Below are positions 1 through 43,971 of a DNA stretch of 64,000 nt, piece by piece (the stretch's first letter is position 1; each line of letters opens with the position of its first letter). This DNA comes from Haplodiscus bocki. Its lineage: Eukaryota. Made by a program: the position numbers and the translations under genes. The stretch covers positions 61,752,001-61,816,000 of the forward strand of contig OZ296649.1 in NCBI GenBank assembly GCA_965655095.1, written 5' to 3'. Under the pieces are notes generated by a model that saw only the letters and a program-made list of their open reading frames with translations, ran no database searches and was not told the DNA's origin.

Positions 1-1775
1 GGGTGCCTCAAGCAGGAAATTTTCAAGTCTCATGGGGAACATTGAACACCCAGGACTTTCTCGTTTGCTTTCTGCCTTCCAATACCAAGGGAAGAGAGGC
101 TTCCTGATTCTGTTTAGAGATTGAAGTGCTATTTAAACTGAAATCTCCTCAAACTTTCGAAAGGTAGTGTTCTTCAGAGGGCAACAAAGGGCGATGCAAA
201 CTTTGGGCAAGGCAGCGAGTGGATCCTTTAACTCGTAGTTTGCGATGCTCTTTGCCAACCTCTCACCTATAATACCCTAAGGAAAAGAATGAGCAGTTTT
301 CCCCAGGTAAACATCGACTTTAGCCTAGTTCTGCTTCTCCAACTTCTTTTTGGTAGATGTGTTCCATGAAATAATATCATTCGCTTCAACCCAGCCGCCC
401 AAAATTTGGTTTCCTCTAAAATAAGTTTTCGCGCAACTTCCAATTCCGTTTTTTGTTCACCTTTCGCATCATAGATTCAACTTTTTGAGAATAAACCAAA
501 ATTCAGTCTGAACTTGTGGGGTAAAATAAAGCCGGAACAGTTGGCGTTCTCATTTCAGACGCTGGTTGTCTTTTCTAGTAACTTTCGATTCATGACTGCG
601 GGTTTTTCAACTGTGTTGAAACAATATGAGCACATACATTTAAACCTCATCGAACCAAAGTTCAACACTCCGGCCATAAGGCATCGTCTCATGCCAGCTA
701 TCTAATACGCTGTACTGAGTTTGAGTCACTGTTCCTTGCTTTCAGTCCGAGATGATTTCGTTGCATTGAAACTAAGTAGATAGTAAGGCATAAGTGCTTA
801 AGCCTACAAAAGGTATCCGTTTGCCCAAATGATCGAGGCTCCTTAAACTCACGGGGGAGTTTCGATGCAATTTTTTGGCATATTCACAGTTTCTGTTCTT
901 TGGGAAAAAATGGCTACTAACCAAAGTTGGAAACAGCGATTGCTTGTTAGGTTTGTCATTAGGTGCATATGCCACTTTTAGAGTACCCTCACAGGGTGAG
1001 TCAGTTTGAGGATGGGAACTGAGCCAAGTTTGTTTCTCAACATTGCTCAGCTAACATCAAAGCGTCTGCACAAGGTTCGAGTTGAAATTTCAAAAGAGGA
1101 CTTCTACGAAATCAGGTTGAGTCTCGAGGAATAAAGGTAGTGGGAGCGCGGGGACAAAATTTTTCAACCGCTCGACTGACGTATTTTTTGATTAGATCAA
1201 ACCGTTGGAATCAAGATTCGCTCAATTGATGTCTGTCTGAAAACATTACAAATATATGGCAATTGAAAAACTGCAAATTGCGCCCAAATGTGAGAACAAG
1301 GATCTTCAACAATAATTCATCTTGATTATTTCGTACTGAAGAAGCACCTTCTACGTAAAGAAAAAACCTTTCTTTGCCCACTACGTATTTTGTTATCAAA
1401 GGTAAGTCTTTGTTCCTGCGTTTGCTGAAGGTGGCATTTTTTGCCAGACAGCAGTCAGAAACGGTTTTCATCAGTCCTCTTCTTTTCGCTTCGGACAGAA
1501 GGTTCAGTATCTCCTTAAAGCCATTCAGTTTGTGGTTGCTCAATGGTGCTGCAATGGAAACTATGCCATTTTGATTGGCCATAGTTTCGCTAAAGCTGCT
1601 AGGTCGTCAAAAAGCGGATTTCGTCAATGCCTGCGGCAATTACTTCCTAAAAAGCTCCGAAAAAAATTTCCTCAAATCAAAACCTTTTCTTTAGTTGCAT
1701 TGGAAATCGATAACCTGTTTTTCGCAGTCAGCGTTGATTATTTTCCTTTCCAATTGCTCAGGTTTCCCGTTTTGA
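1..1775. repeat. Left arm of long inverted duplication IR1 (continues beyond window start)
   Basis: Base 1 gggtgcctcaagcagg is the reverse complement of ...cctgcttgaggcaccc ending at 4170. Mirrored ORFs: 514..705+ with 3466..3657-, and 1211..1582- with 2598..2783+. The match ends at ggtttcccgttttga (1775). Confidence 0.95.
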
Positions 1776-2403
1776 ACACAGTGCTCCACCCAAAGCTCCA
1801 CTCACTTTCTCGTTCGGTTGTGGGACTATCAAGCAAACGAAATTGAATTGCCGTAGTGACTCATAGTATACCCGTGAGCTCGGCAGATTCAACTGAAACG
1901 ACAAGCATTTGGACGAACTTGGACTATGTGAACAATTTTACGACTACAGGAAAGTACATAAGCTTTGTAGTAATCAAAAACAACTATGGTAGAAAAAATG
2001 AAGAAAAGCCTCGTTTCGACAATTTTCCCACATCACAGATTGGGTGAAAAATTTCCCCAATCTATCCAATAACAATCGATAACTATCTGACAGCGTTGTT
2101 AAGTGTAGTCCATTGGAACCAAAGACCTTGGATTTGTTTTCGATTCACTAGCAGTTGGTTTGTATTGCCACTAGAGAGCCTTCAATTCAGCACATTGCCC
2201 TTAGCATATATGAACGCGACATTCGGTAGAGTTTAGTTTTTCTCAGGAACCAGGTTCAGCGGGAAAACATCGAGACTAATTTCGAGTCTACAGTAACTTG
2301 AGAAAGAGCTGCTTGTTTCGTTTCTTCTAATCAAGCACTTCTCTGATATGCGATACAAGGCTGACTCAGTTGCAAAAAATGAGGGTGTCACAACTTTCGG
2401 CCA

Positions 2404-4170
2404 TCAAAACGGGAAACCTGAACAATCGTTAAACGAAAGTACTCAATGCTGACTGCGAAAAACAAGTTATCGAGTTCTAGAGCAACTAAAGAAAGGATTT
2501 TGATTTGATGAATTTTTTTCGAAGGTTTTTAGGAAGTAATTGCCGCGGGCATTGACGAAAATCAGCTTTTTGGTGACCTAGCAGCTTTTGCGAAACTATG
2601 GCCAATCAAAATGGCATAGTTTCCATTGCAGCACCATTGAGCAACCACAAACTGAATGGCTTTAAGGAGATCCTGAACCTTCTGTATGAAGCGGAAAGAA
2701 GAGGACTGATGAAAACCGTTTGTGACTTTTGTCTGGCAAAAATGCCACCTTCAGCAAACGCAGGAGCAACGACTTACCTTTGAATACAAAATACGTAGTG
2801 GGCAAAGAAAGGTTTTTTTTACGTAGAAGGTGCTTCTTCAGTACGAAATAATCAAGATGAATTATTGTTGAAGATCCTTGTTTGGGGCGCAATTCGCAGC
2901 TTTTCATTTGCCATATATTTGTAATGTTTTCAGACAGACATCAATTGAGCGAATCTTGATTCCAACGGTTTGATCTAATCAAAAAATACGTCAGTCGAGC
3001 GGTTGAAAAATTTTGTCCCCGCGCTTCCACTGCTTTTATTCCTCGAGACTCAACCTGATTTCGTGAAAGTCCTCTTTTGAAATTTCATCTCGAACCTTGT
3101 GCAGACGCTCTGATGTTAGCTGAGCAATGTTGAGAAACAAACTTGGCTCAGTTCCAATCCTCAGATTCACTCACCCTGTGAGGGTACTCTAAAAGAGTGG
3201 CATATGTACCTAATGACAAACCTAACAAGCAATCGCTGTTTCCAACTTTGGTTAGTAGCCAATTTCTTCCCAACGAACAGAAACTGTGAATATGCCAAAA
3301 AATTGCATCGAAACTGCCGTGAAATTAAGGAGCCTCGATCCTTTGGACTAACGGATACCTTTTGTAGACTTAAGCTTTTATGCCTTACTATCTACTTAGT
3401 TTCAATGCAACGAAATCATCTCGGACTGAAAACAAGGAACAGTGACTCAAACTCAGTACAGCGTTTTAGATAGCTGGCGTGAGAGGATGCCTTATGGCCG
3501 GAGTGTTGAATTTTGGTTCGATGAGGTTTAAATGTATGTGCTCATATTGCTTCCGCACAGTTGAAAAACCCGCAGTCATGAATCGAAAGTTACTAGAAAA
3601 GACAACCAGCGTCTGCAATGAGAACGCCAACTGCTCCGGCCTTATTTTACCCCACAAGTTCAGACTGAATTTTGGTTTATTCTCAAAAAGTTGAATCTAT
3701 GATGCGAAAAGTGAAAAAAAAACGAAATTGGAAGTTGCGCGAAAACTTATTTTAGAGAGAACCAAAATTTGGGCGGCTGGGTTGAAGCGAATGATATTAT
3801 TTCATGGAACACATCTACCAAAACGAAGTTGGAGAAGCAGAACTAGGCTAAAGTCGATGTTTACCTGGGGAAAACTGCTCATTCTTTTCCTTAGGGTATT
3901 ATAGGTGAGAGGTTGGTAAAGAGCATCGCAAACTACGAGTTAAAGGATCCACTCGCTGCCTTGCCCAAAGTTTGCATCGCCCTTTGTTGCCCTCTGAAGA
4001 ACACTACCTTTCGAAAGTTTGAGGAGATTTCAGTTTAAATAGCACTTCAATCATGGGAGAGAATCAGGAAGCCTCTCTTCCCTTGGTATTGGAAGGCAGA
4101 AAGCAAACGAGAAAGTCCTGGGTGTTCAATGTTCCCCATGAGACTTGAAAAGTTCCTGCTTGAGGCACCC
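2404..4170. repeat. Right arm of inverted duplication IR1 (spacer 1776-2403)
   Basis: Reverse complement of 1-1775. The outer limit cannot be checked because the partner lies outside the window. Confidence 0.95.
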
Positions 4171-8052: not shown

Positions 8053-8526
8053 TCTAAGATCGCACTTTTTCTTCTGTGTTTCGTAGTGTTTTCTTTAGGC
8101 CTGAGCGGGTATTTAGTACTCTCAAAGTATTTCAGATTCAATGTTCTTGTTGGATGCGAGCTCCCGCGGTTAGACTTGCTACAAGTGATCTGTTCTACAA
8201 CTCTTCAAGCTATCGAAGAAATGGTTAGTTTTGCAGATTTATGAATTCAACTTTACTGTACTGCGTCGCCGCTTGTTATGTATCAAAACTTTTATGTGCT
8301 GAAGTTAATGATAAGAGATAATTTAAATCATGAGGTATTTCCGTAATTTGAGATATTTATCTAAATTCAGCATCGTTATGACTATAAGATAAGTTCTAAA
8401 AATTGAAGTTCGTCACAAGAATGTAGCGTCATTAAATGACTGAAGGGTGATTAAGAGATTAGGAGATTAAGAGTTTCTCATATGATCTTTGCTTTCAGCA
8501 TTCCAATCGTAACATGGAATGTTCCA
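8053..8526 (-). repeat. 3' LTR (474 bp)
   Basis: On the minus strand it starts TGGAACATTCC right after the PPT and ends GTGCGATCTTAGA before the TSD. Matches 15243-15630 and, inverted, 12892-12926. Confidence 0.92.
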
Positions 8527-9080: not shown

Positions 9081-11432
9081 TTAATCGAAGCGAATGTCAC
9101 CGTGTGACTTGTAGTGTTCAGGCACATCAGCTGCCCTATAGGTGTAATGCGTATTTGCTTGCTGAGGAGCAGACGCGTGCGGCATCGTGCGTTTAAGTGT
9201 TTCAGTCGCTGCATCAGTTGCGATTTTATTGAGAGTTTGCTGGGAGAGAGATATAGTCCGAGCCAATTGAGAATGTTCACGAGGCGCAGTATCTATAACT
9301 GATAGTTGAGTTTCATCTGACTGTTCGGGTTCAACAGCTGTTCGAGATTTTTTCGGACAGAATAATCCACACCAAAGTGGCGTCGCATTGTTGCGGTGTT
9401 TATATCTATGATAAATCCAGACAACAATTACATGAAGAAACATTGATCCAGCAAATGATATCAAGCTCATCACGAGAGAGTGTCTGATAGAGAGACGGGA
9501 ATCAAATTCTCTTGAGAGCGATGGACACAATAGCGTCATTTTTGTCGTAGTGGGACGTGCCATTCCCAAAAGTTTTTTCGGGTCGCGCATTTTAGGGCTA
9601 TCAAGTAGTGTTTCTCGCACTTCTTTTAACATTGCTATTCCTGCTTCTGCTTTCGTCGAATAATAAGGCATGTCATCAATTTCAGGAAGTTCACTCCACA
9701 ATTCCAGTAGTGGGTCTGGAAATTTGACATTCACTTTAATCGCTGGCATTTCTTCACAAGTGCTGAGGTCTGACCGAATCTTTATATGGTCTCCTGACAA
9801 TTGTTTACCACATTTCAATGTTATAATACAAATGCGACATCCCGGACAGTTAACAATGCCGGATGATGTAGTTGACTCTGTGTCTGATTCAAATAAAGTA
9901 AAAGCAGTAGTAGCGGACGTTAAAAGCCAAACTCCATAACCTAAGTTTTCTGCTTTTTCTGTTACCGGCAATACTATCTGCTGTTTCACAAACTTGTAAT
10001 GCTGCCACGCTATCTTTGAAGTACAGCGTTGCCAAACAGGAATCGTGACCTGTTTCTGTAGCAATTCTGTCTAGGCATATCTGATAGCGTGACGATCCAG
10101 TGCATCTACCAAGATCATATTCAGTCAAAAATGCGGTTTCTTTATTATTTTCTGAAATAGCTAGGTAAGGCGCTTCTAATTTCCATTTGATTGCCAAATC
10201 TGGTTCCGGTTGAGGCATAGGCACTGCAATTGCGCGGAATCCCGTGAAGGCTGAATCTTTCGTTGCTAGTGGAATTGCAATGCGCATTATGAGTCCTTGT
10301 TCAACCACTAAAACATCTCTAAGTAATTGCGATTCGTAATAAGCAATGATTTCATCCATTGGTATAGCTAAAGAGAGTCGGTCCGATTTTCGCCATTGTT
10401 CCGATGCAACATCATCTAAGATAGCTAGAAGTGCTTGTCTAGGAACAAGTGAAATCGGTAAATAGTTAGTCAGAAGTGGCTGTATCGAATTCATCATGTT
10501 AATTTCGTAAGTGTAAAGAGCGCCTCGATAACTTTTGATGTTTGCGAATGTCAAGGCAAGCAGCGATGAGATTGTATCATAATTGAAATTAATTTGCTGT
10601 CTTGAGAATAAAAGTTGGTCACATTCTCGTAGTACATGAATATTTTGTTGAAATACTTCGAAGTGCTCTTCGATAATTCTCCAGTTACGATTTTGGACTT
10701 CAAGCATTTCCTTTTGGACGGATTGAAGTGCTTCTAATTCCGTGGTAACCATGAAGAATTTGTCAGTCACTTCATTTCGTAATTTGAAAACATCCTGCGT
10801 TATGCTTTCTGTAAATTTGGCAAGTTTCTCAATATTCTTTGCATTTTGTTTTGCTCTTTCATGACATGATCCAAAAATACATCTTAATCCACAGCTACCG
10901 CTTCCTAAAGCTATTCCGGATCCGAAAAGTCCGACTGGTGCGAGCGCCATCATTGCAAGTGGCTCTGCCCTCGGCTTCCGATTTCGAGCTTGAGCGGTGG
11001 CGTCTTCAGTGTTCAAGAATGAGGAAGTGTACATGCGAAGAGCCTCTAGCTCTTTCTCTGCAAGTGTAACTTCGTTCTCAACTTGATGCAGTAACCAATC
11101 GATATCGAAAGTAGAATCACTTTTCTGAAAGTTTAAAGAGTAATCAAGAAGACATTGCCAGCTAGACGCGTCCCATAGAGGTGCAAGTTTGTTAATATAG
11201 GCGCCCAATTCAGCACTCACGTTCATTTCAAACTTTGGAAAAGGGACCAGAAAATCAACGTTAACTTTTCAGCTAACAGAATTTTTGTAACATGATTGAA
11301 AATAATTCCATTTGCAAGTATCGCTCCAGAGTCTTGATCAGCAATAATGTAGGAATTCCATTCAGGCAGAGCGGCATTTATAGCCAGTAGGACAGTAACC
11401 ACTGAAAAAAAAGCGTCACTCAAAAGAAACAT
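9081..11432 (-). pseudogene. env: env: class I fusion glycoprotein-like, two frameshifts (~11240, ~9980)
   Basis: Signal-peptide-like MFLLSDAFFSVVTVLLAINA. Furin-type RNRKPR is followed by a hydrophobic Gly-rich fusion peptide (AEPLAMMALAPVGLFGSGIALGSG), a heptad repeat, a Cys-rich region and a TM segment (SLVMSLISFAGSMFLHVIVVWIY) with a cytoplasmic tail. Lies just upstream of PPT/LTR. Confidence 0.88.
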
Positions 11433-11985
11433 ATATGTCACTCTGCGAGTCACGGAAGAGAAACAAAACGACAGCTGGGAAATATGTATTTTTTTTCTTT
11501 TTTTTGGTTTTTGCTGGATTTTGCTTATGTGCGTAAAAGGTATTCCGAGCTTTTCAGAGACGAGAAAAAAAATGTGCTTCTTAATGAAGGTCGGAGAGCA
11601 GGTCTTGTTGTGTTGTGGGGACAGAACCTGCGTGGGGGAGCACCGTGTGCCCCGAGTTTTGTCCGCTTGTGGGTCCCCAGAAGTGCTGTCTGCTGAGGGG
11701 ACAGATGCACCGTGGGTAATGCTATGCGTATTAACCCTCATTATTCTGCTGCTCATCATAATGAAACAATTACGATAGAAATAGTCTACAGTCGTTAATT
11801 TTAGTAGTCGGACAGTAGCTTAGATGTAGGTGTAACAGTTGTGCATAGCTAGTTTTGTGATCGTCATATTAATTCAAAATTCGAATAATAGTTCCTGACA
11901 CGTAAAATCTTTTGACCAGTAGGCCCTACTATGCCGTATCAGGTGAAAATTTACTTTGGCAAAATAACATATAAACTCTGTTGCA

Positions 11986-12891
11986 GATGAGTCTGTGAGC
12001 GTAATGGAGACCCGACAATCTGGATTCAAAAATTGCACCATCAACGAGATTATAAACGAAGAGAACCTAATTAAACTTGGATGGGTACCAGTGCCGTCAA
12101 TAAATGGCAGTGGTTGTACTTCGTGGACTGAAATAACTGAACAAATGAAAAAAAATGGATTAGCAGCTAGCGTTTGTGGTTATGGGACGAGTGAACCTGT
12201 AGTAGTCAGAAATCAGCAGCTCTTTGTTATCAATAATGAGTTTGTCAAAGATATTGCATCTATGAAAACTGGGTTACGGTTGATTTTAAATGTACGAAAA
12301 AAGTGGAAATTAAACGGGAGCAATAGAATTTATGGACCTATATCCAGTTTGGACTCAGAGTAATCGAAAACCTCCAATGCTTGGCCGTTCAATGCAGATG
12401 GTTTATGCAGATATTCATTTCCAAACACGCTTGGACTAACAAAAATAGATGGAATTTGTTCGTTTGGAAAACGGTTCACCGCAGGACACGTTGAAACCGG
12501 TGGTGACGATAGTATCACCCATGTGCCTGTTGGAAAAAAATTGATGGTAATTGCAAAACGTGGCAAGGCTTCAGGTCGCGTGGAGTCTCTGTTAACCTCT
12601 GCAAAGGCTGTTGTGAAGTTGTTATCAAAGCCCCCTTCTGCTCTCTGGAAACAGACCTTGAAGTTTTACATTTCGGACCCTTATTCGCTAAAGATTCAAC
12701 CAGCCCTTTCTGCTCACGCTGTCATTACTGTAAATGAGGGACCTGCTTTGGTCGTCGGATTTGAAGGTAAAATGGATGCGGATATAAATCGTTGGTCTCA
12801 GGTGCTTCAGTATTATTCAATAGGTTTGGGGCGTGATCGGAGAACTGTATTGCTGCAAAATTATTCTGATCCGCAGGCCCTGCTTAAATAG
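11986..12891 (+). pseudogene. JmjC-domain 2-oxoglutarate/Fe(II) dioxygenase-like ORF (one premature stop at 12361-12363; 3' end coincides with inversion breakpoint)
   Basis: ORFs 11995..12363 and 12523..12891 share a frame. Reading through gives ...RFTAGHVETGGDDSITHVPVGKKLMVIA...LKIQPALSAHAVITV... with Thr 12478, His 12487, Glu 12493, Lys 12538 and His 12715. Confidence 0.8.
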
Positions 12892-12926
12892 AACACTACG
12901 AAACACAGAAAACGTGCGATCTTAGA
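12892..12926 (+). repeat. Inverted terminal fragment of the 5' LTR
   Basis: aacactacgaaacacagaaaacgtgcgatcttaga is the reverse complement of 8053-8090 apart from a 3-bp indel and one mismatch. Confidence 0.85.
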
Positions 12927-12940
12927 TGCTGACAGGAGTG
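12927..12940 (+). promoter_or_regulatory. Degenerate primer-binding site, tRNA-Leu-like
   Basis: TGCTGACAGGAGTG directly follows the LTR end and matches 12/14 of TGGTGTCAGGAGTG, the complement of a typical tRNA-Leu(CAG) 3' end. Confidence 0.65.
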
Positions 12941-13414
12941 TGCGACGACGAGCTACACTGTGATCATCCACAACGACAATTGCAGAAATCTGGACTACTG
13001 GTCTAAAACAGAAGAAACAGCAGGACGATCTTGCCAAAAGTAGAAGATTGGGAACTCTACTTCTATTGGGAAATACAAAAGACACCCTCACCCAACACTA
13101 GTGCAAAGATGAAGCTGAAAACGATTTTCGTTGCCTGTAAGTTTCAAATTCATTCTAATCCTAGAGAGTTTCAGAAGCAGTAAAATTGATAAAAGCGCTC
13201 AGATTCTTTCAAACTGTTTGACATCCTCATTTCAATTGAAATCATAATTTTAACTCAGAGCGCCGAAGCAGTAAATTTATTTTGAGGCAGTAACTACCAA
13301 AATTTCCCGTTTTTTCTAAACTGATTCATTCCGTCATTCATTGTCTGTAATTTTTTGATCTGCTAAAATAAGCCCGTCATTCTTGAATTTTCAAAACCTT
13401 GGTAATTCGCAAAA

Positions 13415-14664
13415 ATGGCCGCAGCAGCAGCTCAATCGACAGTAAGCCTACCACTACGGAGGAAGTTCAAAAGACAACTGGACAGATTTTGAATCCTTAT
13501 TCCGTAGTATAATTGAAGTTACAGGTATTGCTGATGCACGAAGAGGATTTTTGAAACTACAATTAAAAGACTCAGCATTACAATTTTTCCACACACTAGA
13601 CCAAAACACCGGAGCAGACTTAGAAATAACAATAACAGCGTTAAAAAATCATTTTTGCAACCCAAACTTGAAAGAAATACATCATATCAACTTAGAAAAT
13701 ATGAAATTTAATCACAGAATCACCGGAAAGAATTTTTGGTCAAACTTCAAAATTTAGCTCTGAAAGCTTATCCAACACCGATTGATATACCAGTAGCACC
13801 AGTAGATGGAGACGTACCAAATGACCAGGACAGATTCGATCGAGAAACACGAGAAAATCAAAATAGACGGAATTTTGCGCAAATGGAAAGAGAAAGACAT
13901 ATAATTCGTCTCTTCAAAAAAGCAAGGCCAAACTTCATCAGATTAAAACTTCTGGAAGAACCAGAGGATGCAACAATTCAAGAATTATGCACAAAAGCAA
14001 GACAAAAACTGAATCTTAGAGAATTATGTCCAGTTGACGATTGGTCAAGAGACGGATTTAATGAGATGAGCTCTGAAAATTCAGAAAAATTTCTCACGGT
14101 TCTCACAAAAATGTCTGAAAATCAGAACTCCCTTGAAAACAGAATTGATGCCTTGACGCGAAAGCTTAATTCACAGGAACAAAATTCATCAAATAACTAA
14201 AAGGACAATGAACAACAAACTTAAAGGGAATTTCAGAGGCCGAACGTACCAAAATAGAGGAAACCGAGGAAATTTAAATAATCAAGGATATCAAAATCGA
14301 AACTATCAAAATCAAGGATCGAATATTTATCAAAACAACCAAAATCGCGGCAGATATAGTAATAATTTCAATCGAGGAAGCTATCGAGGGAGAAATAACT
14401 TTAGAGGCAATAACAGAGGAAACTTCTCGAATAACTATAACAATAATTTCAATAACAGCAATTCTCAGCAGCAAGGACATCAAAATAACGAAACAACAAG
14501 AAACACTGGAAATTCAGGAGGGCATATTGAAACTACTGCATTTTCACAAAAAGTTTGCTATAGTTGCGGTTAGCCAAATCATACCTCTCGAAATTGTGAA
14601 GCTAGAGGAAAAAGCAGTACCAGAGGTGGACAAATACCGTTCAATTCGCAACCAATAAAACTAA
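13415..14664 (+). pseudogene. gag: gag (frameshifted and with stops), Asn/Gly/Arg-rich linker and CCHC zinc knuckle
   Basis: Starts MAAAAAQSTVSLP; capsid-like LKLQLKDSALQFFHTL...LKNHF; N/Q/RG-rich tract 14208-14500; CYSCG*PNHTSRNC at about 14556-14597. Confidence 0.87.
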
Positions 14665-14699: not shown

Positions 14700-15242
14700 T
14701 AACCTTACTTTGCACACCACAGATAACGTTTAAGAAACTTCAGAACAAATAACGCACACAGAGAAGACTTTAAGCAATAAAAATGAAATTAATGAAGTTA
14801 CTCTGCTTGAAGGAGAAAACCTCATGTATATTCCATTGAAATTTGAAAATAAATTTCGCAGGAGAGCACTAATCGACACAGGGGCATGTGCAAACGCAAT
14901 GCCAGCGGATTTTGATAAAAAATTGAAAGAGGAATCCCCATACTCAATTTCCGAATTGCAACAAGCCTCATTTTTGAATGTAAAAGTAGCCTCTGGGCAA
15001 ACAGTAAAAGTTTTGGCTCAGGTGGATGTTAAACTCAAAGTTAACGACCACAATTTTCAAGATAGTTTTCTGATACTTCCTTCAATGAATAGTGTTGTTC
15101 TTGGTAACCCGTTTTTCAGGAAATATAATATTGAAATCAGTCCTGGCGAAAATCTTTTGAAACTGCCAGAAATAACTTATCAGCTCAATGAGATAAGAAT
15201 ACCCAAGGAAGTAAGACGCAAAATTCCACAAAGTAGATATAA
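14700..15242 (+). pseudogene. pol: 5' part of pol: aspartic protease, truncated by junction to LTR
   Basis: RALIDTGACANAM active site and VVLGNPFF motif. After IPQSRY the sequence switches abruptly to LTR at 15243. Confidence 0.9.
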
Positions 15243-15630
15243 CAATGTTCTTGTTGGATGCGAGGTCCCGCGGTTAGACTTGCTAAAAGTGATCTGTTCA
15301 ACAACTCTTCAAGCTATCGAAGAAATGGTTAGTTTTGCAGATTTATGAATTCAACTTTACTGTACTGCGTCGCCGCTTGTTATGTATCAAAATTTTTATG
15401 TGCTGAAGTTAATGGTAAGAGATAATTTAAATCATGAGGTATTTCCGCAATTTGACATATTTATCTAAATTCAGCATCGTTATGACTTTAAGATAAGTTC
15501 TAAAGTTTGAAGTTCATCACGAGAATGTGGCGTCATTAAATGATTAAAGGGTGATTAAGAGATTAGGAGATTAAGAGTTTCTCATATGAACTTTGCTTTC
15601 AGCATTTCAATCGTAACATGGAATGTTACA
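15243..15630 (-). repeat. 5' LTR, first 388 bp in original orientation
   Basis: Minus strand starts TGTAACATTCC; about 95% identical to 8139-8526; flanked by TSD ATGCC. Confidence 0.92.
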
Positions 15631-17020
15631 ATGCCTCAAAATTGCAATGGTCGTTAAAAACTAACTATAACCTGCAAACCACTCAGGAAGCTCCTCAATT
15701 TTAGGTTTTCAGCAGCTTCATTTTTTTGCATTGTCTGATGTTCCATTACTGAGAGACGAAATTATCAGCCTAACCTCCACGGGTTTCCACTGGAGTAGAC
15801 GGTTCTGGTTGTTTTGACTGGACGCCCTCAACTATCCAGGACACAACTCGGCCACCTGTGACGGCCGAGATACTGGGCTTTGGAGGCAATGGCCTGAGCT
15901 ATATTATGGCTCTACTCTGCTAACCACCATGGCTACACAAATCAGATGCGATGAAAACAGCGTCATGGGAACTCGAAAGAGAGCTTCGCCCGGTCAAGAA
16001 TACCGAAACAACGCAAGTCGGAGCTGAGCGTCAGTAAGCTACTGCAGAGAAACGGAGCACAGAGGCGAACCAACACTTTCTGACTAGTCGGATACATAAT
16101 TGACACTTTCAGAAACACGCAAAATATTTGTCAAGAGGTAGTTCGAAAGTCAAAGTGAAACAAGAACCTGTAACAGTGTCCGATGCTCGAAAAGTTGATC
16201 TGTCAATCATGGCTTTCTAGACTCACTATTTTGCGGCCGCATGCCTAACAGAGTAAACAACGACAAAAAATGTGTTCTGAAAAATATTAGATTTAAAATT
16301 TTCCAGCTGGCAAAAAATCCGATAGTTCTGAGCAAGATATCAAAAGAGCAAAATTTTCAAAGCTCCGATGTCTTGTTCACCAATCTTAACCATTTTCAGA
16401 GCTCTAAAATTTTTACATGTAACGTTTTTTTGGTGACACCTGATACACTGCCAGTACTGTCTCATATTCGAAGCATTGCCATGTCAAGCATTACCTTTTA
16501 GAATGCTGTTGTTCATTTTATAAACCAACGTTCAAAAATTTTGAACTTCTAAGAAAAAGAAAATAAAAAAGCTCCTCCAATAAGATGTTTCAAAAGGGGC
16601 CCTTTTTGACCGTTTACACTAGATCAAAAGACTCTTTGATGAGGTCAAAAAATGCAAGTTTTGGACAGGATAAAAAATCCGAATAGGCGGGTTTCCAATA
16701 CATATTCCTACTCTCACTCCGAACCTATAAAAAGAAGACGCTCAGCAAACGTTGAAAGAGAGGTAAGTCTCGTTTTGGGAGCATAGAATGTGAGAAAAAT
16801 ACAGGAAAAGCACGCATAACAATGTGACTCAAGAAATCAAACAGACGCAACTCCAGGTGTTAGGTTTGGTTGAGATGCGCAGGAACAACATTAGAAAAAA
16901 ATCTAGGAAGGCCATACCGTGTACGGCTCCGGAAACGACAGCCACACGGAGTCAGACCGAAATTGGAATGCGAAACGTATACACAGTGTAATAGCACTGT
17001 CATATAGATGCTAAGGGTTC

Positions 17021-20000
17021 AGTAGTAAGGAAGAGAGCTGGTCAGACGGGGGGATGGAGCCCCCTCCATGTATTAAAATAGAGTAGTACTTTATGACGCC
17101 TGTGGTAATTTAATGACACCTGCGGATACTTTATTAAGGAAGGGCAAGCGGGAGGGAGTCGTACACGCACGGCACAGAGCGGCGGGTATTTTATCAATGG
17201 AGCTGACAATTTTATGCCTGATGCTGTGTAAAAAAAGTGAATGAAAGTTTGGAAAAGAAAAATAGAAATATGAATTTGAACAAATACCTCGTATATATAG
17301 AAATTATTCATGCAATGGAACATTATGGATTCCATCTACTTCCAAATTTCGTTTAGGATAAAAATAGGAGAATCTTTCCTTTGTCTGCTCGTAGGTTATT
17401 CAAAAGGCTGGACACTTACTTTTGTATTGATTGGTGCCTCGGAACAATTCTAACTGCATGTTTTTGGTTGCGGCAGGTTGAAAATATATGGAAGTTTGTC
17501 AGAAATAGGCATAGACAAGCTGTTATTGAGAAGCACCCAGCTCTCGGCTAATTTTTTGGGAAAGAGAACAAAAACCATTTATCATTAGACCAAGCTCTAC
17601 CCATTAAGTGTTGAGACTAAATTCCGACATCTTAAGGCTTTAAAAACAAAGCTGCATTAAATTTTTAATACTTTATGATAAATAATCAATTTCAAAATCA
17701 CAAATCTATCAGGAAACGAATCCCTGATTCTCCATAAAATGGTCTAATGCTTACTTCTACTGATAATTGCGATGCGTTACCGCAGTTCGATCAGCCTTAT
17801 TTTTATAGTTTGTCTTGTTTGGATTTGAGTGCTTCTGTTTCAAGAATTCCTTCCTCAATAATCTCTCTTTAGTGACACCTGGCATTCGTGCAATTAATTT
17901 GAAGTGTTGGTTAAAGTTTAGGGCTCTCTCCATGATATCGAAAAATTGTCCTTTTATAGTACACTCTTTTATTGAATCTCAATAGGAACACGGTGTAAAA
18001 ACAATCCACAAACTGATACGTCAATTGATGCTCATTTAACTTGTCAAACAATTGTTTCATACCATTTTTTTCAATGAGTAGTATGTGGTAACGGCAATCA
18101 CATAAGGAACAGTAATTTGCAGTGCGATTCAGTCCGCAAAAAAAACGCCAGTAAGTAGATGTTTCTCAAATTGATCCGTGGGAGATTTGTGAGTGATGTG
18201 AATAAAAACTGGGCTCTGCTTGTAACACAACAGCAGCCATTATTGTTGTAACAGCTTTGTCTTCTCAAACAAAAATGAGTTGATTGACGTACAACCACAC
18301 AGCCTATTACCTAGATGTACATAAATGGGCAAAGTTTACACTTTTACTTTGAAAACCACTTTTGTTGACCAATTAGCATGCAAAGAAATTGCAAGCTGAT
18401 TCTGAGTGCCATGTAGGGAAAAAAATCCCCGAAGATTTGGTAGCTGGAAATGATCAACAAACAGCGTGAAGTTTGCGGAGCCTCGAGATTGGTGACTCTA
18501 ATTCGAAAAACTTATATTTTAACCAAAAAAGGAAGCTCTTCCGTATATGGACAAAAACTGATCTTTTCAGTAAAACACGATTTCTCATAAATGTATGGTT
18601 GCCTCTCATCTCTTCGCATTCGGAAAGTTCGACCTACCAAGAAACAACACTTTTTCAAATATGATTACAAGCTAAAAACGTAAACCGCTGAAAAACGTTT
18701 CGAAAACTTACGAGTTTCTGTGAGAGTCGACCAGATTGCTATTTAAAATGAATGAACTCCCATTAATTAATGCGAGACGAGACTAACAATATTCAAAGTA
18801 TAGGCATAAAAGATTGGGTATATACAGCATAACCTTAAAGTAGTGCAGTACGTGTCCTAACCGATCCAGCTTTAAAGTAGTACAGTACGTGTCCTAACCG
18901 ATCCAGCTAGCAGAGTCCAGGGTCGGATTATAGTTTGCAGAGATTACCAATGCAGTAAGAGCTTGGAGGAGGAAAGTTGACTTCAATTTGCACGAAAACA
19001 AATTCCAGCTCTTAAACGGAGTTGATCGTTCGATAACCGTTAAGAAAAATGTGCAGAGTAATAATTCCACAGTAATTTGAGAAAAGTAAAGAAGTAAAGA
19101 GAGTTCATTCTGGGAGTTCGCTGAGATATTGGGTCATTTAGCGCAGTACAAGGTACTAACTGAGCATTTCTCTCGTAGCGTGCACTGTTTTTTGTTGTTT
19201 CTGTACCCAGCTCTCACAAATTACTTGTTCTTCTGGTTGAAGGAAGCCATTTCAGCAAAAAGTGTTCAACAGACGAATCTGAAGTGAACGTAAAAATAGA
19301 AGCAACTTGTTTGTAGCAATGCAGAAGAGAAAACTGCTACAAAAACATGAAGCAAATATGAAGCAAGTGTTTCTTATTACAATATACCATAAAAGAAAAG
19401 TCCATAAAAGAGAACACTAGTCACGTAACCATTAAAGGAGCTGTCAATCGAAAGTTGAAGTGACGCCATTGGTACCCCAAGTAAGGATACACAAGTGAAA
19501 AGATAACACAAACTACGTGATGCTATTCTTCATCAACCGCTGGAGGCACTTTCTCGTTTTGGTCTTTCGTAAGAGAAAAGCAATCAAGTGGAACAATGAA
19601 CCTACGAAAAGGCGAAAGATTGTCTGAGAAAAACACTCAAGTGGAATAGTTTCACCTGATAGGGAGACAGGCTATCTGGGAAAACCATTCACGAGGAACA
19701 GTGATCCTGCGCTAAGTCGAAAGATTGTCGTAGAAAATCACTCAAGTGGAACAATTTCCACTGATATGGAGACAGCTTATCTGAGAAAAACAATCTTGCG
19801 AAACAACCATCCTCTCAGGTATATAGGGTTTGTCTGAGAAAACTATGCGTTTCCTGATAAGAGAGCAATAAGCACACAAAATGAAGTGCTGTAAGGGACC
19901 AGTAAAAGCTACCATTGAGGGAATATTTATTGCGTTACAAGAAGCCGGTGAATTCAAAACACTTTTTCCTATATGGTGCTTCTTTGCTTTTCCAATCCTC

Positions 20001-20775
20001 GGAGCTCGTTCTCAAACCTCAAGTTCCTCAAGCTGCTTCCCTTTCAGTGACTTTTTGAGTTTCAACGCGACAAGTTTCCAGAGACCGAAACGCTTTTTTG
20101 TATCAATACTACGAGAATATGAAGATTTTTCACTCTCTGTCAATTACGCAACCTTCCCTACAAGGACACTTTTTTCATTATTTTTTTGCTGTAGATTCGT
20201 GCTGGTTTGAAAGTACAAAAATGCAAATGTTTACGTTTTCACAAACTAAAATGACTCAAATAGTGACTTATGCATGCGACTTTTTGTTCAATTTCAGGTG
20301 CATCAAAAAACCATTTAAACTCAAAATGTGACATGTCATAAAATGTTCCATTCGAAACCTGATTTTCAATTTTCCTTTCAGGTTTTCATTCAATAAAAAT
20401 TTCTATTGCTAAGGTCGAAAACAATTTTTTGTCCGGAACGGAAAAGAGTCATCTTTCTGTATTTTTGCGTAGAGACGGGTTGGTTGTAACATTGCAGCTA
20501 CCATCTGAATACTGATGCGGTTTCGTGAACAATTGAATCTGAAAAACAAAATGACATTATTTCTTGCACGAAGTCACCAAAACCGGAAGACCTTCAATTT
20601 TGGAAGCTTGTCATGGCAATGACCAAAAAGGAAGAATTTCCGTCTATGGAGATTCGTTGTCTCAATGACCAAGAAAGAAATTCCATACAAGGTAGGTTTG
20701 ATTCGATTGAAATGGCATAAAAGCAGAAACTTGCACTCTGAGAAACCATTCTTTATTAATCGTCCTCAAATAGAA
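17021..20775. repeat. Left arm of inverted duplication IR2 (includes ~1.04-kb segment 19039-20080 absent from right arm)
   Basis: 17087-19038 mirrors about 24531-26483 and 20081-20769 mirrors about 23834-24524. Mirrored ORFs: 18098..18298- with 25270..25470+, and 20098..20331+ with 24273..24506-. AGTAGTA occurs at 17021 and 17082. Confidence 0.93.
18835..18908. repeat. 37-bp tandem duplication (mirrored at ~24660-24733)
   Basis: Two copies of ttaaagtagt(g/a)cagtacgtgtcctaaccgatccagct. Confidence 0.9.
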
Positions 20776-20816
20776 TATACACTCCTGGACTGACTATACT
20801 TTTAAAGTATAGATTC

Positions 20817-20970
20817 AGTGGAAGTGTTGGTGTCAAGAGCTTTATTTGTGCAGAGAGCAGTCTACTTAAATCAAAGAAACAGAGAAGTGTGCGTTCTGTT
20901 CAATCTTCTGTCTCTTCGATTAAAGTAGACTGCTCTCTGCACAAGCCAAGCTTTTGACAACACTTCCACT
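20817..20970. repeat. MITE-like fold-back (~65-bp imperfect arms)
   Basis: agtggaagtgttg...tgtgcagagagcagtctact pairs with agtagactgctctctgcaca...caacacttccact. Confidence 0.8.
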
Positions 20971-21119
20971 AGGTCGATACAAGAAGAGTGCATATAATCA
21001 ATCTACGAGTTGATATGTGAAGCAGGATGCGTCCATTTTCGGCAGCAACTTTTCAACATCACCCAGCATTAAAATGTGTTGTCTCCAATTGGGTAAAAAG
21101 CAAGTCTTAATGTCGAGGT

Positions 21120-21480
21120 GGGTAAGAGATGGACAAAGTGTTAAGGTAGGCACTACATGAACAATGTACTAAGGTAAGGTTTATTACGGCAATGTATTAC
21201 GATAGGCATAACATGGACAAAATGTTAAGGTAGACAATATAAGAACAATGTAATAAGAGAGGGTATATTTCGGCGAGGCAAAAAGAAAAGCAATACATGG
21301 ACAATGTATAAAGGTAGACAAAAAATGGAGGATGTTTCGAGATAGTCAATAAATCGACAATGCAGAAAAGTATTGTATAGGTTCGGGTGCCTGATTCAAG
21401 GAGTTAGGATAAAGTTCGGCTTTTAGCAAGAGCCGAGTGCGTTCGGCGATCAATGTATTAGGATAGGTTGTAAAGCCAGC
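21120..21480. repeat. Degenerate ~30-bp minisatellite (caatgtattaaggtagg core); related copies at 22490-22900
   Basis: Repeated (g)gacaatgt..taaggtag units. Confidence 0.65.
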
Positions 21481-22099
21481 TCTTCCCAGTAAAAAGAAAA
21501 GGTCATAACGCCTCGAAGCTGAGAAAGATGTACACCTATGTTTTAAGGTATGCTATACTTCTGCCTTGTTTGAAGGTAGGATGGGGCTTCTTGAAGTTAC
21601 GGGGCACCTAGGGTAGGTTAAGACCCCCTCTTCCACATGTCTTGAGATCCTTTTTGATCAGGCAACATCTTTCTTTGTTGGTGCATAGACTGCGACTGAG
21701 AACAACCTACACCTAATCTAAACAACGTGTACATTCTGTGTAAGCATCAGTCTCTGTATTGTTTTGCTTTTTCGTGTTGATCACACAATACCATTAAAGC
21801 AATTGCATGGAGTTCCAACTAAAGTGTTCTTTTTCATGTTTTCAGATTTCAGAGTGTTTTTTTTTGAAAACACTGTTGATCTGCTAAAACTTACGCTCCA
21901 CGTAGTTCTGTTCGTAATCTCAGTGAACATTTTTTTGTCACGACGCTGTTATTTCCAGATTGATAGGCGAACTGACGTTTGCTGCAGATTTCAGTTGTAC
22001 ATGTGGCAACTTGATCCATTACAGACATCTTTTCACTTCTCTCTACAACATCTAGTTACTATAACTGTCAGCAGAAAGGACTATTCAGTCAGAAACTGA

Positions 22100-22430
22100 A
22101 AAACAAGTTAAAAATCAGATCTTGAATCAAAAGTTTTACAACGTGTCAGATTCTGATTTGAAAAAATTGCAACGTGTCAGGTTGTTGGAAAACTTTCAAC
22201 GTGTCAAATTTTGACGGAAAAAATACATTCAAAAATTACGTTTCAGCTCATTTTACTCCGCAAAAACGACGAACTTATCATTTTTCGTGCTTGTTTGAAA
22301 AGCATGATTTTGAGTTCAAAATTTTACAACACGGCAGATTTTGAAAAAGATTTTACTTGTTAGATTTTGAAAGAAAAATTTTACAAAGCGTCAGATTTTG
22401 AAACTGGTCTTTCGTAACGGGTTAAATTTA
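22100..22430. repeat. Degenerate array of caacgtgtcagattttga units
   Basis: Units near 22139, 22170, 22197, 22327 and 22384. Confidence 0.7.
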
Positions 22431-22717
22431 TGGTTTGTCTTCCTTGCAATTGGTCAAACTCTCACCCAATTTTACAAAAAAACGAAGTTTTTTCGGCAAT
22501 GTATTAAGGTATGGCATGAGTTCTGGTGGTCGAGTTAATGTAATAGGAAAGTTTGGTTTCCAAACGGTGATCAATATAATGAAATTTATTCGGACAGCTT
22601 ATTCGAGCCGAGCATGTGCAGCAATTTACTTGGATAGGGAATTGTATTCGACAAGTTTTTAATAGGGACTATAGGATTTGCAATGTATAAGACATAAGGA
22701 GACAGGTTTCAGAGACT

Positions 22718-22770
22718 GCTTTTCGGCGTCATGTTGCTTTTCGGCGTCATGTTGCTTTTCGGCGTAATGT
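22718..22770. repeat. 19-bp tandem repeat, about 3 copies
   Basis: tgcttttcggcgtcatgtt repeated. Confidence 0.9.
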
Positions 22771-23827
22771 TTTATGATAGCTGCTCATACGACCGACCTG
22801 TTCAAGTATTGAAGGAGGGTATAGAGACAGGAAGCTGAGGAGGGTGTGGAACTATGTTTCACGGTAGGATGAATTTCAGCAATATATTAAAATAGGTTGC
22901 AGATTTCGGTGCTTATGGGAGTTTTACTTTATTTAAGTACTTGTTGATGAAGTTTTCTTCGCCGAAATTTTCAAAGAACAGGAACCAAGAAAATATATTT
23001 CCAAAAACAATGTGAAAAATGCACCAAAAAATGATGGAAATGGAACAACTAAAAGAAACAGTTACGCCTAAATACATTTACAGTTCATCACAAACGGAGG
23101 AACTTCATCCATTGCTCCTGGCTTCCAACAAAGACTCAACTCTTCAACCGTAGCAGCTGTTTCAGTCACTCGTCCGTCCGGTAAGTGATTTCTTTCAAAG
23201 AACGCAAAACTGACGCGTAACCCCTTCTTATTACTATCTGCCGATCATAATGAGGAGAATACAGGATGTTTGTCTGTTTTAGGTTGGTGATCTGATGTTT
23301 CACGATACTCAGTGGTCAATAGATACGTATCGAGAGTGTAGTTGAGTAATAAAGGAGCTGCTGGATCCACGTCCCATACAGTGCTAGGGTCCAGAAAGAC
23401 GTTAGAGGTAGGCTGCTCATCAAGAAAACAGCTATGTTGATCGTTACTAGGGATGAATTTGAGGTTTTCTCAGGATCTGGAAATAATTTCATGTTCCCGC
23501 TTGATGTGTTCAACTTTTCTAGGAGCTTCAGGGCAGAGAGTAATACCGCAATCAAAATCCACACAATGTTCTCATCAATGAAGTGCACGAAGTCATCGAG
23601 AGAAACAGTCTTCTTGAAATTATCACAATTCGATACAAGGTCTACTTCCGCGCTCAAAAGGGAATGAATTGTGAGCTTCGAGCAAACTTTATGCAAAAGT
23701 GACAAAATGCAAAAGTCAAATTTTTCTTTTTCGACAAAGGTTGAGCAGTGAATTCTGTTTGTAGACAGCTGATAGTGCGAAAAATCACCAGTGGTTAGGT
23801 ATGTTGGTAGGTGGAAGAAGCGCGTTA

Positions 23828-26601
23828 TTGCTGTTGAGGACGATTAATAAGGAATGGTTTCACAGAGTAGCAAGTTGCTGCTTTTATACGATTTCAATCG
23901 AATCAAACCTATCTTGTATGGAATTTCTTTCTTGGTCATTGAGACAAGGAATCTCCATAGACGGAAATTTTTCCTTTTTGGTCATTGCCATGACAAGCTT
24001 CCAAAATTGAAGGTCTTTCGGTTTTGGTGACTTCGTGCAACAAATAATGTCATTTTGTTTTTCAGATTCAATTGTTCACGAAACCGCATCAGTATTCAGA
24101 TGGTAGCTGCAATGTTACAACCAACCCGTCTCTACGCAAAAATACAGAAAGATGACTCTTTTCCGTTCTGGACAAAAAATTGTTTTCGACCTTAGCAATA
24201 GAAATTTTTATTGAATGAAAACCTGAAAGGAAAATTGAAAATCAGGTTTCGAATGGAACATTTTATGACATGTCACATTTTGAGTTTAAATGGTTTTTTG
24301 ATGCACCTGAAATTGAACAAAAAGTCGCATGCATAAGTCACTATTTGAGTCATTTTAGTTTGTGAAAACGTAAACATTTGCATTTTTGTACATTCAAACC
24401 AGCACGAATCTACAGCAAAAAAATAATGAAAAAAGTGTCCTTGTAGGGAAGGTTGCGTAATTGACAGAGAGTGAAAAATCTTCATATTCTCGTAGTATTG
24501 ATACAAAAAAGCATTTCCGTCTCTGCTCTGGTTATCGAACGATCAACTCCGTTTAAGAGCTGGAATTTGTTTTCGTGCAAATTGAAGTCAACTTTCCTCC
24601 TCCAAGCTCTTACTGCATTGGTAATCTCTGCAAACTATAATCCGACCCTGGACTCTGCTAGCTGGATCGGTTAGGACACGTACTGTACTACTTTAAAGCT
24701 GGATCGGTTAGGACACGTACTGCACTACTTTAAGGTTATGCTGTATATACCCAATCTTTTATGCCTATACTTTGAATAATGTTAGTTTCGTCTCGCATTA
24801 ATTAATGGGAGTTCATTCATTTTAAATAGCGATCTGGTCGATTCTCAAAGAAACTCGTAAGTTTTCGAGACGTTTTTCGGCGGTTTACGTTTTTAGCTTG
24901 TAATCATATATGAAAAAGTGTCGTTTCTTGGTAGGTCGAATTTTCCGAATGCGAAGAGATGAGAGGCAACCATACATTTTTGAGAAATCGTGTTTTACTG
25001 AAAAGATCAGTTTTTGTCCATATACGGAAGAGCTTCCATTTTTGGTTAAAATATAAGTTTTTCGAATTAGAGTCACCAAAGTAGAGGCTCCGCAAACTTC
25101 ACGCTGTATGTTGATCATTTCCAGCTACCAAATCTTCGGGGATTTTTTTCCCTACATGGCACTCAGAATCAGCTTGCAATTTCTTTGCATGCTAATTGGT
25201 CAACAAAAGTGGTTTTCAAAGTAAAAGTGTAAACTTTGCCCATTTATGTACATCTAGGTAATAGGATGTGTGGTTGTACGTCAATCAACTCATTTTTGTT
25301 TGAGAAGACAAAGCTGTTACAACAATAATGGCTGCTGTTGTGTTACAAGCAGAGCCCAGTTTTTATTCACATCACTCACAAATCTCCCACGGATCAATTT
25401 GAGAAACATCTACTTACTGGCGTTTTTTTTGCGGACTGAATCGCACTGCAAATTACTGTTCCTTATGTGATTGCCGTTACCACATACTACTCATTGAAAA
25501 AAATGGTATGAAACAATGGTTTGACAAGTTAAATGAGCATCAATTGACGTATCAGTTTGTGGATTGTTTTTACACCGTGTTCCTATTGAGATTCAATAAA
25601 AGAGTGTACTATAAAAGGACAATTTTTCGATATCATGGAGAGAGCCCTAAACTTTAACCAACACTTCAAATTAATTGCACGAATGCCAGGTGTCACTAAA
25701 GAGAGATTATTGAGGAAGGAATTCTTGAAACAGAAGCACTCAAATCCAAACAAGACAAACTATAAAAATAAGGCTGACAGAACTGCTGTAACGCATCGCA
25801 ATTATCAGTAGAAGTAAGCATTAGACCATTTTATAGAGAACCAGGGATTCGTTTCCTGATAGATTTGGTGATTTTGAAAGTGATTATGTATCATAAAGTA
25901 TTAAAAATTTAATGCAGCTTTGTTTTTAAAGCCTTAAGATGTCGGAATTTAGTCTCAACACTTAATGGGTAGAGCTTGGTCTAATGATAAATGGTTTTTG
26001 TTCTCTTTCCCAAAAAAATAGCCGAGAGCTGGGTGCTTCTCAATAACAGCTTGTCTATGCCTATTTCTGACAAACTTCCATATATTTTCAACCTGTCGCA
26101 ACCAAAAACATGCAGTTAGAATTGTTCCGAGGCACCAATCAATACAAAAATAAGTGTCCAGCCTTTTGAATAACCTACGAGCAGACACAGGAAAGATTCT
26201 CCTAATTTTATCCTAAACGAAATGTGGAAGTAGATGGAATCCATAATGCTCCATTGCATGAATAATTTCTATATATACGAGGTATTTGTTCAAATTCATA
26301 TTTCTATTTTTCTTTTCCAAACTTTCATTCACTTTTTTTTACACAGCATCAGGCATAAAATTGTCAGCTCCCTTGATAAAATACCCGCCGCTCTGTGCCG
26401 TGCGTCTACGACTCCCTCCCGCTTGCCCTTCCTTGATAAAGTATCCGCAGGTGTCATAAAATTACCACAGGCGTCATAAAGTATCCGCAGACTCAATAAA
26501 ATATCCGCCGCTGCCTCCAAAAAAATTCTCACTCCATCCTCCCAGGTTCGAATCCCCGTAGGCCCCTCGTCTTCCCCCTCCTCTGTTCACACTGTACTAC
26601 T
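23828..26601. repeat. Right arm of inverted duplication IR2, ending GTACTACT
   Basis: Reverse complement of the left arm, with GC-rich ~20-bp subterminal repeats (gtatccgcag/ataaa) and terminal TACTACT at 26595-26601. Confidence 0.9.
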
Positions 26602-43059: not shown

Positions 43060-43971
43060 ATGGTTAGAAAATGCAACACGTGTAAAAACAACATTGCTAC
43101 CTCGGAAAAAACCTATTGTTGCGTGGGCTGTAACCAGCACATGCATCTTACCACCGAATGCACAGCTCTCTCAAACGTTGCCATCAACGGAATCAAGGAA
43201 CTCGGTAACAATTGCATGCTCATGTGCAACACTTGTCTTGACAATGGAGAATGAGACGTGTTCATTAGATGCAGAGCACAAACGAAGGTCGAGTCCGTAA
43301 TCTCAGACTTGAAATGCGATGAAAAGCTCTCCAATCTGGAAAACAAGTTCTCCAAACTTGCCGACTCGAAACTTGCAAATCTAATTTCGAAGTCATGTGA
43401 CAAAATTGAACAAAACTATGCTAAAGTGACAGCCAAAACGCTCGAAAAAGCTGCCTCCGTGGTAACTTCCTCAAACTCCACAACAAAAGTGAAATCTGAA
43501 GATCTCAACATCTCAGCAAGCTTCAGAATACAAGGGATCGCTGAAGAGCCCGAGAAAACTGTCGATGAGAAACTTGTCCCAACCACCGAAAAAGTCAAAA
43601 ATATCCTACAATCCTTCAATGTCAATACCGAAATCACTTCAATGAAGCGACTTGGAAAATTTGACAAAACAAGAATCAAACCAAGGACCCTTCTTGTTAC
43701 GGTCCGGAATGAGTACGATAAGAAGCTAATCATGGCGAAGAGCGTGGAAAACAGCGAAGTCTTAACGGAGGAGTCCATCTACTTCCTTCCTGCATTATCA
43801 TTGGCTGACGTCATCAAAGAGAATCAAGTGCTGAAAATGAAAAGAGAACTTCTCGATGAAGGTGTTCCTCGTGAGAAACTAAAAATTCGCAACTTTGAAT
43901 TATTCAATGATGGTAAAAAGGTAGCGATGGATGCAACCGAGCTCCCTCCCAAGGAGCAAAGTTCATTTTGA
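43060..43971 (+). pseudogene. LINE-A ORF1 (PHD-like zinc finger, coiled coil, RRM-like region); premature stop 43252-43254
   Basis: CNTC..CVGC..H...C..CNTC; FRIQGIAE; RLGK..KPRTLLV; KLKIRN. Confidence 0.88.

Follow-up and report, generated by a model that had tools for sequence, protein, structure and literature searches.

The window that we analysed is a stretch of 64,000 nucleotides of Haplodiscus bocki (GCA_965655095.1, contig OZ296649.1, positions 61,752,001 to 61,816,000). It contains a dead copy of an env-carrying Ty3/gypsy-type LTR retroelement, bounded by two direct repeats of 385 bp at 8142-8526 (-) and 15246-15630 (-), which are 95-96% identical and run TG...CA. The first is the 3' LTR of an element whose ancestral orientation is the minus strand, as set by homology to the LTR of L003, a contig holding a decayed relative; it has a purine-rich tract on its inner side. 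The second lies in the 5' LTR position. Between them, an env-like gene at 9081-11759 (-) consists of three overlapping ORFs and is broken by two frame changes. Its translation shows a basic cleavage-like site followed by a hydrophobic stretch, a long helical heptad region and a C-terminal membrane anchor. It shares 41-56% amino acid identity, over the main aligned stretches, with the ORF downstream of pol in L001, L004 and L005 (contigs holding intact relatives), but searches of Pfam and of PDB sequences gave no match, so that the env could not be typed as F-like or gB-like. A short spacer (11760-12003) separates the start of this gene from that of a divergently oriented gene at 12004-12891 (+), antisense to the element, which is predicted to have a JmjC fold and to resemble Fe(II)/2-oxoglutarate (2OG) oxygenases.

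The rest of the element is rearranged. A primer-binding-site (PBS)-like sequence at 12927-12940 (+) marks the start of an inverted block; it has 2 mismatches to the PBS that abuts the 5' LTR in L004 and L005, which is weak evidence by itself, since the window contains 7 matches at ≤3 mismatches against 4 expected. It is followed by gag (13452-14645, +), with an N/Q/G/R-rich region and the start of a CCHC knuckle, inverted relative to env and the LTRs and broken by two frame changes and two in-frame stops. The only remnant of pol is an aspartic protease (14752-15245, +), identified by Pfam matches to gag-asp_proteas (E 7e-6) and Asp_protease_2 (E 7e-5), each just under its curated cut-off, and by homology to the first ~150 amino acids of the L005 pol. 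Its end is directly joined to the second LTR. No reverse transcriptase (RT) or integrase ORF was found anywhere between the LTRs or next to them, and RNase H is also absent. The 5-bp flanks of the LTR pair are TTCAA and ATGCC, which indicates that no target-site duplication (TSD) is present for these repeat bounds and that the two LTRs may not stem from one simple insertion. Rfam and tRNA scans of the window were empty.

An earlier note on this DNA had proposed that two small ORFs at this locus are one frame of about 300 codons broken by a single stop, with JmjC cofactor-binding motifs lying in the gap between them, and this observation was confirmed. Translation of 11986-12891 (+) gave 302 codons in one frame, with one internal stop and a terminal stop, and the two 122-aa ORFs (11995-12363 and 12523-12891) are in this same frame. 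The motif lies after the stop and before the next start codon. It comprises T39, H42, E44, K59 and H118 of the downstream part, i.e. T-x2-H-x-E, with spacings of 3 (Thr to His), 17 (His to Lys) and 76 (His to His), as the note had indicated. A tblastn search of the window with the frame revealed no second copy. The two parts of the frame were searched separately, and natural intact relatives were used wherever a full-length protein was needed.

Sequence searches did not detect a known domain. Pfam gave no JmjC or cupin hit with either part of the frame, and none of 29 family members matched a JmjC, Cupin_8 or related model at E≤10, nor was any other Pfam domain, including PHD, CXXC or F-box/LRR domains, found in them. 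A phmmer search of PDB sequences gave only a spurious tau repeat, and two profile searches of the same sequences gave nothing significant. However, an exhaustive phmmer search of 1.84 billion cluster representatives with the downstream part returned 136 proteins at E≤1e-3, 64 at ≤1e-10 and 12 at ≤1e-30, the best being 89% identical, and several apparently full-length members were 346-394 aa long. A word-indexed protein search with the alignment gave only 4 hits, all unnamed, and none of 20 clusters that we looked up carried a name or an accession, all of them deriving from ENA, Logan or JGI assemblies. The residues listed above form the core of the two most conserved blocks of the family, and, with the number of homologues, this shows that the observation is more than chance. 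Among about 100 members covering these columns, many of which are fragments of decayed copies, Thr was found in 90/98 (92%), His in 86/98 (88%), Glu in 92/103 (plus 4 Asp; 93% for Glu or Asp), Lys in 97/104 (93%) and the distal His in 91/105 (87%), the range over the five columns being 87-93%.

Further evidence on the nature of this protein was obtained by structure prediction. An AlphaFold2 model of P0026, an intact relative, had a pLDDT of 87.4 and a pTM of 0.81, and comprised eight core strands with two helices inserted between the fourth and the fifth, as read from DSSP and as is typical of JmjC proteins. The T/H/E motif ends the second strand, the Lys opens the fourth and the distal His opens the seventh. 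All of the listed Foldseek matches in the PDB (ranks 1-50, probability 1.0) were JmjC oxygenases, namely ceKDM7A (6.9e-10), PHF2, PHF8 and KIAA1718, then FIH, TYW5, JMJD5, JMJD6 and KDM2A. The window's own downstream part (175 residues) was modelled with a pLDDT of 91.3 and matched PHF8, KIAA1718, PHF2, NO66, FIH and KDM2A, as well as a few cupin phosphoglucose isomerases. KDM2A (4qwn) gave the tightest local superposition, with 21% identity and an rmsd of 4.3 over 135 columns. A search of a viral structure library (BFVD) returned giant-virus cupin/JmjC proteins and, more weakly, AlkB domains. A profile of 69 sequences had a single PDB sequence hit at E≤10, again ceKDM7A (E 0.5, not significant alone), in which the T/H/E/K and distal-His motifs of the family were aligned onto the motifs of that enzyme. 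The fold assignment therefore rests on predicted structures, with modest global TM-scores (0.3-0.5) and high rmsd values, and the geometry of the putative metal site is inferred from motif spacing, strand positions and this one weak alignment. That the Thr and Lys would contact 2OG is by analogy with KDM2/7 enzymes.

To determine if the gene belongs to the element, we examined the long contigs that could be retrieved for intact members. Every one except one showed the same layout (L001, L004, L005, L007, L008, L010 and L011), these seven LTR-bounded relatives coming from at least two other samples. One strand carries gag, then pol, then an env-like ORF of about 580-870 aa in the least-broken copies, while the JmjC-like gene lies between pol and env on the other strand. 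In L005, Pfam identified RVT_1, RT_RNaseH, Integrase_H2C2 and rve in this order, together with a weak zf-CCHC match (below cut-off) in gag; the same pol families were called in the other six. Some members also have a Macro domain at the C-terminus of pol. The LTRs are 99.7% identical in L001 and L005 and 98% in L004, and L004 and L005 have 5-bp TSDs and a tRNA-type PBS ending in the complement of ...CCA. L003 has the same full layout in decayed form, and its env-JmjC stretch is 79% identical in DNA to that of the window. The exception was L009, where an intact member (P0150) has no gag, pol or env within 10 kb. Short Logan contigs that hold just the ORF (for example L002) could be transcripts, but they show no poly(A).

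Among intact copies, the dN/dS of the JmjC-like gene was 0.21-0.27 at dS 0.15-0.17, as compared with 0.29 for gag and 0.18 for pol, indicating purifying selection similar to that on these genes. It is nevertheless the fastest-evolving gene of the element, with 28-40% identity where the RT/pol ORFs are 54-76% and env 43-59% identical, though its divergence tracks theirs overall (Spearman 0.67). One pair broke this pattern: L001 and L011 are 93-95% identical in DNA across env and across gag-pol, but share no detectable DNA homology over the ~2.9 kb that holds the JmjC-like gene and its spacers, and the two JmjC-like proteins are only 40% identical. The segment therefore behaves as an exchangeable cassette. 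A cluster of basic residues was present in the C-terminal tail of 15 of 19 full-length members. The spacer shared with env is 780-1100 bp in intact relatives and ~240 bp in the window; counts of poly(A) and TATA motifs around the gene in relatives were inconsistent and not above what AT-rich DNA gives, and a bacterial promoter/terminator scan has no relevance to a eukaryotic element.

The window copy is non-functional in every gene. By comparison with L003, the env-JmjC part is colinear, the stretch from the PBS-like site through gag to the protease is inverted, and everything from RT to integrase is missing. The JmjC-like gene has one in-frame stop and has lost its C-terminal tail, homology to relatives ending at its 3' bound, although all five predicted cofactor-binding residues are still present. 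The dN/dS between this copy and L003, its closest relative, was 0.64, as expected for two dead copies, and is thus uninformative.

The interpretation given in the earlier note, i.e. that a retroelement captured a KDM-like JmjC gene, possibly to erase repressive marks on its own copies, was partly supported. The three conditions that the note had set out as capable of refuting it did not materialize: a JmjC-type double-stranded beta-helix was recovered by structure prediction and Foldseek, though not by Pfam; the ORF is not a one-off insertion; and the gene is under purifying selection with the H/E/H residues kept. The inferred ancestral position, antisense between pol and env, and the inverted block were also found to be correct. 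In contrast, the statement that the element is TSD-bounded failed, and the residue numbers cited for KDM2A were not confirmed. The assignment to KDM-type histone demethylases rather than JmjC hydroxylases and capture as a single identifiable event were likewise not established, and the anti-silencing role is pure inference.

[quoted passage not shown] The analysis establishes this linkage and antisense placement, the predicted fold, the conservation of the residues that bind Fe(II) and 2OG in JmjC enzymes, purifying selection and cassette exchange. What we infer is that the gene is transcribed from its own promoter in the spacer that it shares with env, that the product is an active Fe(II)/2OG oxygenase, that it enters the nucleus through its basic C-terminal tail, and that it modifies a host or chromatin substrate to the element's benefit. 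The most attractive version is the removal of repressive lysine methylation from proviral chromatin, but a protein or RNA hydroxylase role is equally allowed by the data.

The alternative that survives best, and which remains possible though less likely than not, is that the protein is a hydroxylase resembling FIH, JMJD5/6, NO66 or TYW5, acting on a host protein, on the element's own Gag, Pol or Env, or on tRNA/RNA, rather than on chromatin silencing. Like many JmjC hydroxylases, it is a single-domain protein without a reader domain. FIH, TYW5, JMJD5, JMJD6 and NO66 scored only 1-2 orders of magnitude behind KDM7, PHF2 and PHF8, and the Thr (-3) and Lys (+15 to +17) contacts with 2OG are shared by several hydroxylases. 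On the other hand, the very top structural hits and the only profile hit, itself weak, are of the KDM7/PHF2/PHF8 type, KDM2A gives the tightest local superposition, and the basic tail suggests nuclear localisation. It is unlikely that the protein is a non-catalytic scaffold or decoy, for example one that binds methylated histone tails or titrates a host factor. The protein is extremely divergent, without any Pfam match, and is the product of the fastest-evolving gene of the element, which is typical of binding interfaces in host-parasite conflict, but the five cofactor-binding columns are the most conserved in the family even though many sampled copies are decayed, and pseudoenzymes usually lose such residues. 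Over-reading of a generic cupin-like beta-sandwich is very unlikely: sequence-level support is not significant, TM-scores are modest and cupin isomerases appear among the hits of the 175-residue part, but two independent models have pLDDT values of 87-91, the listed top hits of the full-length model are all of JmjC type, the insert between strands IV and V is present, and the sole weak profile hit is the same protein as the top structural hit, with the catalytic motifs aligned. Finally, a host gene or pseudogene lying by chance next to retroelement debris, or a one-off transduction, as the rearranged state of the window element, its lack of TSD, RT and integrase, and the isolated copy in L009 might suggest, is contradicted by the seven LTR-bounded relatives with the gene in the same place and orientation, by its divergence broadly in step with pol and env, and by purifying selection.

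The closest structural matches, the KDM7/PHF8/PHF2/KDM2 lysine demethylases (e.g. ceKDM7A, PDB 3n9l, and KDM2A, PDB 2yu1 and 4qwn), share the T-x2-H-x-(D/E), Lys at +17 and distal His pattern. The family differs from them by its low sequence identity (12-21%), its Glu in place of the more usual Asp, the absence of reader domains, its small size and its location in a retroelement. The single-domain hydroxylases FIH, JMJD5, JMJD6, TYW5 and NO66 have a similar size, the same fold and cofactor residues, and slightly worse Foldseek E-values (1e-8 to 1e-5); we found no evidence for any of their substrates. JmjC/cupin proteins of giant viruses and cyanophages and AlkB domains of plant RNA virus replicases are also virus-encoded Fe(II)/2OG-fold proteins, but they are much weaker matches (1e-6 to 1e-4) than the cellular KDM7-type enzymes, come from unrelated genome types and show no sign of direct ancestry.

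Literature searches found no description of a JmjC, cupin or oxygenase gene in an LTR retroelement, although absence from the texts searched is not proof of absence. A survey of 'ancient errantiviruses' of metazoans (Chary and Hayashi, eLife 2026, PMC13524379) describes elements with LTRs, a tRNA-type PBS, gag with CCHC, PR-RT-RNase H-IN and an env-like membrane fusion gene, in GAG-POL-ENV order, but with three ORFs, and its text contains neither 'antisense' nor 'JmjC'; the present clade has a fourth, antisense gene in a long pol-env spacer. Deltaretroviruses and lentiviruses encode antisense proteins, and antisense ORFs are found in plant Retand/Tat-lineage gypsy elements (PMC11963269). These also lie opposite to gag-pol, between pol and the 3' LTR, and therefore need an internal promoter, but the proteins are not enzymes of known fold and are unrelated in sequence, whereas here the product has a recognisable, predicted oxygenase fold. 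VANC of the Arabidopsis VANDAL/Hiun DNA transposons is an anti-silencing factor, and LTR elements of bdelloid rotifers carry accessory env, DEDDy, GDSL and other ORFs (PMC5408684, which contains no JmjC, cupin or oxygenase term). The concept of an extra gene acting on host control or host interaction is the same, but the element class, the protein and the mechanism all differ.

The boldest reading is that this clade of elements, in a probably invertebrate animal host, encodes its own nuclear JmjC lysine demethylase, expressed from an antisense cassette that is swapped between element lineages, which would strip host-imposed repressive histone methylation, such as small-RNA-guided H3K9 methylation, from proviral chromatin. 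We regard it as unlikely on present evidence, but it would represent the first transposon-encoded histone demethylase and an enzymatic anti-silencing system in animals. Retroelements are usually seen as passive targets of chromatin silencing, and their known counter-measures are few and non-enzymatic, or come from plant DNA transposons. A conserved, selected and modular gene for a JmjC-fold oxygenase inside env-carrying gypsy elements would show that these elements carry enzymatic host-manipulation genes. It would add a fourth gene to the gag-pol-env plan just described across metazoans, and would give a concrete handle on the arms race between elements and heterochromatin or small-RNA silencing. 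Even if the substrate is not a histone, this is a divergent family, with a predicted JmjC fold, that current domain models miss and that is so far seen only in unannotated assemblies.

The LTR pair of the element in the window has no target-site duplication, the 5-bp flanks being TTCAA at positions 8137-8141 and ATGCC at positions 15631-15635, in contrast to what was found for L004 and L005, two LTR-bounded relatives of this element. A PBS-like site is present at positions 12927-12940, just past the end of the JmjC frame, so the inverted block runs from the PBS to the protease and abuts the LTR. The gag region upstream of the CCHC knuckle (window 14208-14573, plus strand) is an N/Q/G/R-rich low-complexity stretch with RGG-like repeats, which suggests a disordered nucleic-acid-binding segment.

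Residues 25-92 of the downstream part of the frame gave weak, repeated matches (5-14 stretches each) to very long proteins (P0053, P0082, P0093, P0108, P0109, and P0112). P0082 carries AIR9 A9 and SCAB Ig-like repeats, and these matches probably reflect similarity between beta-strand repeats.

Elsewhere in the window, we found three copies of non-LTR (LINE-type) retrotransposons with endonuclease and RT domains, at positions 53647-56994 (minus strand), 43258-46723 (plus strand), and 35224-36691 (minus strand). The first of these has an upstream ORF with a PHD finger (Pfam E-value of 8.5e-6), i.e. a chromatin-reader domain in a LINE ORF1 position. Two large, nearly perfect inverted-repeat structures were also present, at positions 17087-26483 and 1-4170. 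One has arms of about 2-2.6 kb with 97-98% complementarity around a centre of ~3-5 kb, while the other has arms with 94-96% complementarity over ~1.7 kb in several blocks.

P0150, an intact family member of 364 aa encoded on the contig L009 (positions 9956-11095, plus strand), had no gag, pol, or env homology within 10 kb. It sits between arrays of ~183-bp tandem repeats in inverted orientation (flanks at L009:7700-9270 and L009:11740-13560), and a partial inverted duplicate of the gene itself is present at L009:5139-5899. It may be a domesticated copy, a different carrier element, or a relic.

Comparison of two other LTR-bounded relatives, L001 and L011, showed that they are 93-95% identical in DNA elsewhere but have unrelated DNA across the JmjC segment (L001:9150-12023 versus L011:9394-12379), and that their predicted JmjC-fold proteins are 40% identical. 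This is recombinational exchange of the whole antisense cassette.

Relatives of the window's element also carry a Macro (ADP-ribose-binding/hydrolase-type) domain after integrase, at the C-terminal end of pol. In the relative L010 (positions 12439-13203, minus strand), the match to Pfam PF01661 had an E-value of 1.1e-5 and a score of 25.8 bits, above the cut-off of 22 bits, while in the pol C-termini of L005 (positions 12007-13713, minus strand) and of a further relative, L008 (positions 11826-13499, minus strand), it scored 15 bits, below the cut-off. The window lacks this domain because pol is missing. The Macro domain could be a second host-interaction module of these elements.
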